Shown in pieces: positions 54,891-60,813 of a DNA stretch of 64,000 nt (position 1 is its first letter; each line of letters begins with the position of its first letter). The notes beneath the pieces are model-generated. The model was not told the origin of the DNA. It made no database searches and was given only the letters and a program-made list of their open reading frames with translations. Where the stretch lies: the sequence record OR258281.1, one strand, 5' to 3'. A program made the translations under genes and the position numbers.

Positions 54891-55185
54891 AGAATTTTTA
54901 GAAACAGCAGTACTTTCAAGTCTATTGACCTATCAATACAAAGGAAGGGCATATACAGTTAAGTGTACTGATACCTACATTCGTATTGCATTAAAACTAC
55001 GACCTTTGATCTTAACATCAACTACAGGTTCAACAATCGATTCAAAAAGAGATATTTTCATTTTTGTAATACCTGAAGCAGTTGATGACGCTTTTAATTT
55101 GAGTACTACGAATGAACACGTACTTCCCTTTGAACTTCTTGATTTGTACTTAAAATTCAAAAAGAATCATGAAACAAAGAACTAA
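54880..55185 (+). CDS. hypothetical protein, DxxFN family
   Basis: GTG start; VDDAFNLST. Confidence 0.65.
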   Translation: MNIKEFLETAVLSSLLTYQYKGRAYTVKCTDTYIRIALKLRPLILTSTTGSTIDSKRDIFIFVIPEAVDDAFNLSTTNEHVLPFELLDLYLKFKKNHETKN

Positions 55186-55198
55186 TGTGTTCTATACT
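55170..55198 (+). promoter_or_regulatory. phage promoter TGAAAC-N17-TATACT driving a non-coding region
   Basis: exact motif; no plausible CDS for about 700 nt downstream. Confidence 0.7.
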
Positions 55199-55201
55199 AC
55201 T

Positions 55202-55229
55202 AGGGAGACTTGAAAAAGCCTCCCTTTTT
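55202..55229 (+). terminator. rho-independent terminator overlapping the predicted TSS
   Basis: agggag-acttgaaaaagc-ctccct + T run. Confidence 0.65.
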
Positions 55230-55900
55230 TACAATCCTGATTGGTGCACCCGTTTAGTAGTGGTGAGTACTTAAGAGTTAGTACTTGCTTGGTGTAATGA
55301 TATATTCCTGATCCTATCGAAAACGTAGATGGCAGATGAGTTGTCCAAACAGAACGATGAGCAAATGAGACCCGTGAAGATTTTACAGTGCACGGCAATG
55401 CGGCTCAATAAAAGTACCGGATAATACCCCGTAGGTACTCTTGATAGACATATATGGCTAAGACCCATACCAAATGGTATAAGGGAATCTAAGTACTATA
55501 CCAGATTCTGCTTCTGATTTCTATAATATAAATCCGTCCAGAATTCCTGAGTACTTCAGATAGATATTAGTATTGATCGTATTGTACTAATATTGAGTGT
55601 AGTGATGAGCTACGACCGTTGCATATGAACAGTGATAGGAAGAAACCGGGCAACCCGCTTCCGTGTATACAATACAATTCACAATACGATTGAATGATGA
55701 CTACCAGCGTCAAAATTAGTTTATTCATCCCTCTTGTGGGGGATGGAAATGAATTCAGTCAAACCGCGTCAAGTAGTAATTGCTGTTAAAGCTATCTATA
55801 ATTGTAGTAGTTTTAAAATTAATTATAACTGATTTGATATGAGAAATGAATGAACGTAGTGAATTCATTACGAATGAAAATCTTGACTTACGAAGTAAGG
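55230..55900 (+). ncRNA. candidate large structured ncRNA
   Basis: About 700 nt without credible plus-strand ORF in a gene-dense genome; many hairpins; own promoter; near tRNAs. Confidence 0.45.
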
Positions 55901-55907
55901 CAAACAA

Positions 55908-56285
55908 ATGTCTGATACCAATAATAGTCCATATGATGATGATTTTAAGTCATTTCTAAAAGGACTAGATTCTTCATGTATTAGTGGCAAAATCATGATT
56001 GAACCTGGTGTATCTATTACTGCGATGATTTATTTCAGTAATGGTAATACTATTTTTGTTTCTCAAATGATTACCAGAGTAGTAAGTTACAGGAATGCAA
56101 GTAGAGATCTTATTCTGTACACAGAAGAAGGCTTGGACGAGGATGATTTTTTTAATAAAAACATGCAAAGAGAAATCTCATGTATCATCAAGTCCAGTAG
56201 TATCAAAATGATACGTGATAAGATGAAACAGTACTTACAGTCTGAAATAAAAAACCTACAAGACTTAATAGACCTACTATCATGA
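55908..56285 (+). CDS. hypothetical protein, DxxFN family
   Basis: LDEDDFFN. Confidence 0.7.
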   Translation: MSDTNNSPYDDDFKSFLKGLDSSCISGKIMIEPGVSITAMIYFSNGNTIFVSQMITRVVSYRNASRDLILYTEEGLDEDDFFNKNMQREISCIIKSSSIKMIRDKMKQYLQSEIKNLQDLIDLLS

Positions 56286-60480: not shown

Positions 60481-60556
60481 GCTTCCTTAGCACAGCAGGT
60501 AGTGCAACGCACTTGTAATGCGTAGGTCGGCGGTTCGATTCCGTCAGGGAGCACCA
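60481..60556 (+). tRNA. tRNA-Thr(TGT)
   Basis: Cloverleaf, ACGCA-CTTGTAA-TGCGT, encoded CCA, 76 nt. Confidence 0.95.
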
Positions 60557-60563
60557 AGATAAA

Positions 60564-60639
60564 TGCTCGTTAGCTCAGTAGGTAGAGCAGTTGACTGTTA
60601 ATCAATTGGTCACAGGTTCAAGTCCTGTACGAGCAGCCA
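60564..60639 (+). tRNA. tRNA-Asn(GTT)
   Basis: TGCTCGT/ACGAGCA acceptor, CTGTTAA loop, encoded CCA, 76 nt. Confidence 0.95.
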
Positions 60640-60644
60640 TATAT

Positions 60645-60735
60645 TATAACTAGACTCTGGTTGAATGTAAGTAGGGTTGAGTAGGCGTACTCAATGTGGA
60701 TTCCGATACTGGAGTAACGCATATTTCTAGTTATA
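60645..60735 (+). ncRNA. candidate 91-nt structured RNA between tRNAs
   Basis: TATAACTAG/CTAGTTATA closing stem, ACTCTGGT/ACTGGAGT, inner TTGAGTA-GGCG-TACTCAA. Confidence 0.4.
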
Positions 60736-60736
60736 T

Positions 60737-60813
60737 GGGGTTGTAGCTCAGTTGGTTAGAGCACTTGATTGAAAATCAGGGTGTCAGTGGTTCAAATCCA
60801 CTCTTCCCCACCA
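60737..60813 (+). tRNA. tRNA-Phe(GAA) with two U-U mismatches in acceptor stem
   Basis: GGGGTTG/CTTCCCC, CTTGA-TTGAAAA-TCAGG, AGTGG-TTCAAAT-CCACT, A-CCA. Confidence 0.85.

Follow-up and report, generated by a model that had tools for sequence, protein, structure and literature searches.

Genomic context and coding status

In the window, by which we denote the whole stretch of 64,000 nt that was analysed, the gene XaC1_450 ends at position 55185 and the gene XaC1_452 starts at 55908. The gap between them (55186-55907) is the longest stretch without annotation within the 12.7 kb of annotation around the locus, and its sole annotated feature is a CDS of 27 aa, XaC1_451 (55749-55832, plus strand). 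The window is identical to Xanthomonas phage XaC1 (OR258281.1, 348,967 bp), with window positions equal to record positions minus 248,000. XaC1 is a Rak2/121Q/GAP32-like jumbo myovirus whose replication and recombination genes are T4-like.

XaC1_451 is located inside the RNA element described below and is probably not a gene, since its frame is broken by 1-nt indels in the homologues and a 3-nt periodicity is absent. We found no coding signal in the element as a whole: variability decays smoothly with distance, peaking at neither lag 3 nor lag 6, a length divisible by three is seen in only 25% of the gap runs in the alignment of element copies, and the conserved blocks contain single-nt indels among the 53 aligned copies. 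A protein-coding gene or pseudogene was ruled out by the unpreserved frames together with the missing periodicity. A preliminary description of this DNA had proposed a non-coding gap of about 700 nt, which is in good agreement with the gene bounds and with the absence of a coding signal. In several related records, up to four "hypothetical proteins" are annotated on the respective copies of the element; these are probably mis-annotations.

A scan of the window against Rfam 15 at gathering scores returned four tRNAs only. When positions 54900-56200 were scanned with E-values up to 10, the core of the element stayed empty, and chance matches fell on the end of the upstream gene and on the 5' hairpin. 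In particular, the Rfam 15 models of GOLLD, ROOL, group I and II introns, RNase P, tmRNA and riboswitches have no match in the element, and ARAGORN reported no tmRNA. The gap, which had been put forward as an unrecognised RNA, thus matches no Rfam 15 family.

A phage-specific promoter class

The element is preceded by a promoter of a phage-specific class on the plus strand (55170-55198), composed of TGAAAC (55170-55175), a spacer of 17 nt and TATACT (55193-55198). From its position, the transcription start is predicted at approximately 55204-55206. The pattern TGAAA[CT]-N16-18-TATA[AC]T occurs 36 times on the plus strand of XaC1 and twice on the minus strand, compared to about 1.9 matches in shuffled sequences, and this enrichment confirms the promoter named in the preliminary description. 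A promoter of the TGAAAC class heads the element in all 53 aligned copies. The same motif, TGAAACG with its -10 box, was reported in the CBB genome paper as a second promoter type that is present in GAP32, too (PMC5259590). Elsewhere in XaC1, the class precedes genes for DNA polymerase, SSB, primase and the late sigma factor. Within the window it is found at positions 159, 7064, 14870, 17933, 25303, 31990, 35077, 55170, 57944 and 60190, and sites of the class lie just upstream of tRNA-Ser (57983) and of a tRNA-Thr/Asn/Phe cluster (60481-60813).

Directly after the promoter, an optional hairpin AGGGAG...CTCCCT followed by a T run (55202-55230, plus strand) was read from the sequence and resembles a terminator. 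It is present in the XaC1 copies c5, c3 and c2 as well as in a minority of the copies from other phages, and it is absent from c4 and c1. The hairpin starts only 4-7 nt past the -10 box, which would place the start of a new transcript at the hairpin or within it. The hairpin may insulate the element against read-through from upstream, or it may protect or stabilise the 5' end.

Domain architecture of the core

All features given in this and the following section are on the plus strand. The 5' domain (55237-55479) comprises P1 to P8, including the P4 pseudoknot, and a further pseudoknot, PKa. P1 (55237-55244/55345-55352, coordinates set by eye) covaries in seven of its eight pairs and is followed by P2, an XaC1-specific insertion at approximately 55245-55300. 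P3 (55308-10/55333-35 and 55316-18/55328-30) shows covariation in five of six pairs. The P4 pseudoknot (55340-42/55353-55; two of three pairs covary) closes over the 3' strand of P1. P5 (55358-62/55403-07; four of five pairs), P6 (55372-76/55391-95) and P7 (55413-17/55435-39; all five pairs) are accompanied by PKa (55398-400/55449-51; two of three pairs), in which the internal loop of P5 pairs with a downstream strand, and a P8 hairpin is located at about 55456-55472.

The string TAAGGGA (55480-55486), invariant in 53 copies, is followed by a variable central domain extending to 55562. Its length varies widely between orthogroups, and its closing helix GUUU/AAAC covaries in four of four pairs; in the window copy it holds a GAATCT/AGATTC hairpin.

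The 3' core domain (55563-55690) with P10 to P14 and PKb is the best-conserved part of the element. The loop of the long P10 hairpin (55563-75/55582-94) pairs 100 nt downstream and thereby forms the pseudoknot PKb (55576-82/55684-90), of which all seven pairs covary and 99.5% are canonical. P11 (55598-601/55611-14) is followed by the P12 pseudoknot (55618-22/55650-54), where GUUGC pairs with a GCAAC located in the loop of P14 (55638-42/55658-62); P13 occupies 55631-35/55679-83. The strings GACCGTTG (55614) and AACCCGC (55652) within this domain are invariant.

Most of the individual stems listed in the preliminary description proved to be true helices. AGTACC/GGTACT corresponds to P7, ATATTAGTA/TACTAATAT to P10 and GGAAG/CTTCC to P14, and all three covary. 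GAGTACT/AGTACTT is an insertion of the XaC1 lineage that covaries among the five paralogues. CCGTG/CACGG, our P6, is conserved but offers hardly any variation by which its pairing could be judged. Two further stems were not upheld: one side of CGGG/CCCG varies without compensation, the loop forming the P12 pseudoknot instead, and CCC-ATACCA/TGGTAT-GGG has no consistent counterpart in the other copies.

The 3' module, direct repeats and terminators

Downstream of the core of about 460 nt lies a 3' module that is conserved, spans about 170 nt and contains two direct repeats. A TGAC just upstream and the GTCA of repeat 1 (ACTACCAGCGTCAA, 55700-55713) form the 5' and 3' arms, respectively, of a small hairpin. 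The next hairpin, TTCATCCC...GGGATGGAA (55724-55748), carries a G run with little or no variation among 53 copies. It is predicted to be a helix and shows almost no covariation; as a stem claimed earlier, it is conserved but hardly varies. Repeat 2 (CAAACCGCGTCAAG, 55760-55773) is followed by a poorly conserved AT-rich spacer (55775-55843) and by a hairpin AATGAAT/ATTCATT with the loop GAACGTAGTGA (55845-55869). The latter hairpin is the GAATGAACGTAGTGAATTCATT palindrome of the preliminary description; the motif GAACGNAGUGA in its loop is conserved in different genera, and the stems were seen by eye to vary from lineage to lineage. The CTTACGAAGTAAG palindrome, also noticed before, turned out to be the terminal hairpin (55883-55903; TTGAC, CTTAC-GAA-GTAAG, GCAA), with helices that covary in three of three and three of five pairs. 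This hairpin ends 4 nt before the ATG of XaC1_452 (55908). As the window copy is not followed by a terminator, its transcripts probably run into XaC1_452.

An intrinsic terminator, made up of a covarying stem and a U run, is present in 55 of 99 copies approximately 460 nt past the -10 box. This core terminator is placed between repeat 1 and the G-run hairpin, and the window copy is devoid of it. In one orthogroup, repeat 1 itself provides the 5' arm of the terminator. The XaC1 copy c2 carries a strong terminator after the whole element, right before the next gene.

The two repeats, 12-14 nt in length, flank the G-run hairpin and change in concert between lineages. They read UAUCAUCGUCAG and AAUCUCGUCAG in most enterobacterial phages, UACCAGCGUCAA and AACCGCGUCAA in XaC1, UACGAGCUUCAA and AACGCCUUCAA in RaK2, and ACCAACGAAG and ACCACGAAG in a divergent metagenomic subfamily of higher GC content. 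By lineage, CGUCAG, GCUUCAA or CGAAG each occurs twice, i.e., the repeats co-evolve by identity and not by complementarity. Being mutually identical rather than complementary, they point either to sites at the DNA level or to one shared partner, for example a protein or a strand with which both repeats pair. A boxA-like resemblance of repeat 2 in enterobacterial copies was dropped as XaC1 lacks it.

Covariation and folding

Helices were counted by script on the full-length structure with pseudoknots, using 73 representatives of at most 97% mutual identity. The 13 helices comprise 69 pairs, of which 95.6% are canonical, and compensatory changes were found in 58 of the 69. Cells with changes on both sides amount to 959, compared to 80-143 when the partner column was slid and to a mean of 253 (maximum 291) after shuffling. 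G:U cells (334) by far outnumber A:C cells (54), and the RNA is therefore read from the plus strand.

For an independent check, a covariance model (R1) was built from 40 sequences of the 3' core with a structure derived by RNAalifold instead of being drawn by hand, and 80 loci were aligned to it. The pair-counting tool reported 95.9% paired versus 73.1% in shuffles, with 0 of 500 shuffles as high; both-side cells number 430 versus 116, again with 0 of 500 as high, and the slid controls reach at most 84. The 3' core of the window copy scores 113 bits against R1 (E = 4e-26). Applied to a plain MAFFT alignment of the whole element, RNAalifold recovered a partial fold only, and the long-range and pseudoknot helices were found by a scan over column pairs.

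The folding energy of the window copy differs from shuffled sequences by z = -2.2 on the plus strand and by z = -0.4 on the minus strand. This is a modest advantage; the case for an RNA rests on covariation. The preliminary description had proposed a large structured non-coding RNA behind the TGAAAC/TATACT promoter and named covariation and conservation in relatives, as well as folding energy, as grounds on which it could fail. None of the three refutes it: covariation is strong, conservation extends over many phages (see below), and only the folding energy is somewhat, rather than clearly, better than in shuffles.

Copies, distribution and age

The XaC1 genome contains five copies of the element at 14.8, 48.6, 117.3, 209.0 and 303.2 kb, all intergenic, all on the plus strand and 70-74% identical to each other. 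Model R1 retrieved exactly these five from XaC1 and none further. The 64-kb window holds no second copy, the other four being located elsewhere in the genome.

A sensitive blastn search with the central part of about 480 nt yielded matches of approximately 66-68% identity in 70 phage records, with several matches per genome. Hosts of these phages are Escherichia, Salmonella, Klebsiella, Erwinia, Yersinia, Cronobacter, Pectobacterium and Serratia. An exact-pattern scan of IMG/VR returned 57 loci, all of them genuine members, and in metagenomes the same pattern returned 119 loci with 86 genuine members. The relaxed pattern GACCGTT-N20-50-AACCCGC gave chance matches only in bacterial genomes and in IMG/VR, a result that does not by itself establish absence from bacterial chromosomes. 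The region is conserved in relatives: about 70 jumbo phages with sequenced genomes have homologues, and metagenomes add more than 140 loci. Eight metagenome contigs (L347, L353, L365, L395, L399, L409, L410 and L427) carry the divergent subfamily of higher GC content (0.37-0.49). Its members keep the 3' core (100-120 bits with model R1), while their 5' half is different and internally conserved.

In the tree, the clade of GAP32, CBB, Serratia BF and Yen9-04 shows five orthogroups, each with one copy per genome, and the duplications are thus old. Orthologues are closer to each other than paralogues. Positions correspond across genera: the copies of 121Q, 7t3 and CBB precede a small gene and a Dam methylase, as does XaC1 copy 2, and the Yen9-04 copy follows gp46 and endonuclease VII, as does XaC1 copy 4. 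XaC1 and Yen9-04 have different genes downstream of the element at the endonuclease VII locus, and the element is retained in both. The five XaC1 copies form one clade although at least two of them are syntenic with different orthogroups elsewhere, and this clustering points to gene conversion among the copies or a lineage-specific duplication. A MITE-like mobile repeat was considered and rejected on account of the syntenic positions across genera, the one-copy orthogroups and the lack of terminal repeats; neither terminal inverted repeats nor target duplications were seen in the alignments.

Searches with Pfam and PHROGs revealed no common theme among the genes downstream of the five XaC1 copies. 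XaC1_35 (L002:15595-15837), just downstream of copy 1, matches a Pfam ParE-like toxin domain (31.5 bits, cutoff 24.4), and XaC1_229 (L004:18056-18496), downstream of copy 3, is a homologue of DUF5856, a "starvation-inducible transcriptional regulator". In RaK2, one copy is located just downstream of the gene of a phage sigma factor.

Expression in metatranscriptomes

A search for RNA-seq data from infections with XaC1 found none. For expression, we turned to metatranscriptomes with 121Q-like copies and compared four runs over a 5.2-kb 121Q locus. The 121Q-like element sequence is present in several RNA libraries. In two metatranscriptomes the deepest contigs are situated on the element, with a depth of 13-24x versus 0-9x on the flanks; these contigs carry no strand. 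One element contig is 100% identical to 121Q, and the same run is almost free of contigs from the flanking genes. The depth pattern is compatible with an abundant RNA, for which it is weak evidence, and it lends equally weak support to the discrete transcript that the preliminary description had asked for. Since the conservation of the element exceeds that of its flanks, contigs of relatives would be drawn to it and possibly inflate the signal, and DNA carry-over may contribute.

Discussion

Implementing all facts, we regard it as nearly certain that the locus encodes a conserved structured RNA element on the plus strand. Comparison of the copies shows that Rak2-like jumbo phages possess a new RNA family, of which XaC1 has five paralogous genes, and that the region 55170-55903 is one of these genes. 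It is the RNA fold that is under selection. The family members are approximately 0.5-0.7 kb long and have at least 13 helices, four of which are pseudoknots, with invariant unpaired stretches between the helices. By its length of more than 400 nt, the lack of coding capacity, the covarying multi-helix fold and the conserved unpaired nucleotides, the element is, on sequence grounds, a large ornate RNA. It is set apart from other RNAs of this kind by its five syntenic paralogues, its promoter class and its 3' module with twin repeats. We found no published description of the element in the literature searched; most subscription journals were outside this search, and an earlier report is possible.

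With respect to function, we tentatively prefer a discrete RNA that is made from its own promoter and works through its fold. Under this explanation, the promoter would yield a discrete, stable RNA that stops at the intrinsic terminator about 460 nt downstream in most family members, and extends through the conserved 3' module in the window copy. Neither a message nor a DNA site, the RNA would act via its three-dimensional fold, as a scaffold, a component of a ribonucleoprotein or a catalytic RNA, much as has been proposed for GOLLD and ROOL. The five diverged and individually conserved copies might serve dosage or supply distinct subunits, and the two co-evolving repeats might act as a pair of sites at which one partner binds or processes the RNA. 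We rank this reading first for the dedicated promoter, the frequent terminator after the core together with the strong one behind the whole element in c2, a conservation at the level of ribozymes or ribonucleoproteins, the unrelated downstream genes of the five XaC1 copies, which offer no shared target, and the metatranscriptome pattern. Several observations speak against it. Several copies, the window copy among them, have no terminator and border immediately on the following gene, as would suit a leader, and a gene in the same orientation comes straight after every copy. The ornate RNAs known to us are single-copy, and a set of five syntenic paralogues would be more usual for cis-regulators or origins. 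Finally, repeats that are kept identical could equally be protein sites at the DNA level.

The closest parallels to a discrete RNA of this size are GOLLD and ROOL. With these, the element shares a length of 0.5-0.8 kb, many helices and pseudoknots, conserved unpaired nucleotides, the phage origin and a promoter of its own. The XaC1 window copy is moreover located 2 kb from a tRNA gene, and the preliminary description had drawn its parallel from the tRNA regions of phages. This link is incidental, as the other four XaC1 copies are not beside tRNA genes. Furthermore, the element matches neither Rfam model even at E-values up to 10, has five diverged paralogues per genome at fixed positions instead of one, stems from Gram-negative jumbo myoviruses and possesses an extra 3' module with two co-evolving repeats. 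Non-coding transcripts of similar length are also found in a distant jumbo relative: ncRNA002 and ncRNA004 of PA5oct are lncRNAs of 450-620 nt detected by RNA-seq, some of them highly expressed (PMC7318152). Neither nhmmer nor model R1 detected any similarity to them, and they are analogues at most. PA5oct ncRNA004 (L309:1117-1735, 619 nt) likewise has a sigma-70-like promoter in front of its start, and a C-run/G-run hairpin lies near its end, which may be an analogous arrangement only.

The preliminary description had offered an origin or a regulatory hub as its alternative, and either may be what the RNA serves. A second explanation, which we consider rather unlikely, is a leader that acts in cis on transcription. 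Here, the folded RNA would govern its own polymerase, either by antitermination of the put type or by attenuation under control of a ligand or protein, as in riboswitches and T-boxes, and only transcripts from the five promoters would pass the core terminator and later terminators into the downstream genes. The layout of promoter, structured RNA, terminator, 3' module and co-oriented gene is the one expected of such a leader, and multiple copies per genome are normal for cis-regulators. The terminator is found at one fixed place in those copies that have it, the conserved repeat of one orthogroup being its 5' arm, and the gene behind c2 would need read-through of a second terminator. The promoter-proximal hairpin of some copies could block read-through from upstream, and the window element stops immediately before an ATG. 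Nevertheless, 44 of the 99 copies, including the window copy, are without the core terminator, and an alternative antiterminator pairing was not found. The downstream genes share no function, and the endonuclease VII locus swaps its gene and keeps the element. The size of the element is a further objection: with about 460 nt and four pseudoknots, the core far exceeds any antiterminator or aptamer known to us. The put RNA of HK022 comprises about 70 nt in two stem-loops. It resembles the element in being located just past a promoter, in occurring more than once per phage genome, in being followed by terminators and then genes, and in dispensing with a translated product; we know of no similarity between the two beyond this.

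A role in replication is less plausible still, and we consider it improbable. The five loci would be T4-style origins with middle-type promoters, at which the folded RNA, in the manner of ColE1 RNA II, would stay hybridised close to the G run and AT-rich spacer and prime DNA synthesis, with the repeats acting like iterons. T4 has several replication origins, which compares well with about five dispersed copies, and the promoter class also precedes the replication and late sigma factor genes of a phage with a T4-like replication and recombination gene set. A precedent for a structured primer RNA of about 550 nt exists in RNA II of ColE1, which has a dedicated promoter, a G run near its 3' part and a fold that is itself functional. 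The element resembles it in these traits, its G run being invariant and followed by an AT-rich spacer, and its identity-coevolving direct repeats resemble iterons. The sequences of both RNAs are unrelated, however, and the element differs by the terminators inside most of its copies and by its five loci per genome. An intrinsic terminator upstream of the G run would release the RNA in most copies, the hairpins past the AT-rich spacer covary too, which indicates selection for RNA structure in that part, and the repeats are only two. GC skew changes at no copy and cumulative skew is monotonic, a weak point given that T4-like phages are not expected to show such a change.

Explanations without an RNA gene, be it a protein gene in decay, a mobile repeat or a DNA repeat kept by recombination, are hardly credible: the small ORFs annotated inside the element and the single cluster that the five XaC1 copies form in the tree, possibly through recent spread or gene conversion, are set against compensatory changes in most pairs, a preference for G:U over A:C, frames that are neither preserved nor periodic, fixed syntenic positions across genera with orthologues closer than paralogues, and the missing terminal inverted repeats and target duplications.

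As a speculative and somewhat doubtful reading, the family might represent a new class of RNA machine that is specific to giant T4-like phages. This might be a hetero-oligomeric particle of five non-identical subunits, or else an RNA of very large size acting in cis, by which the transcribing polymerase is reprogrammed or replication is primed at five fixed genome positions. In both cases, the twin repeats would be docking or processing sites of a phage protein.

To our knowledge, large and intricately folded RNAs without known function are rare, and GOLLD, ROOL, OLE and raiA have each started a line of structural and functional work. Phages of E. coli, Salmonella, Klebsiella, Erwinia and Xanthomonas that carry the element described here can be grown in culture, and the element can thus be deleted, tagged, sequenced and imaged. 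Natural variants are numerous enough for a full covariation model, and the unusual layout of five syntenic copies constrains the hypotheses. Annotation can also be corrected in the many records that place small "hypothetical proteins" on the element. If it acts in transcription control or in the start of replication, it would explain the middle-phase organisation of 350-kb genomes; if it forms a free RNA particle, it would extend the ornate RNAs to jumbo phages of Gram-negative bacteria.
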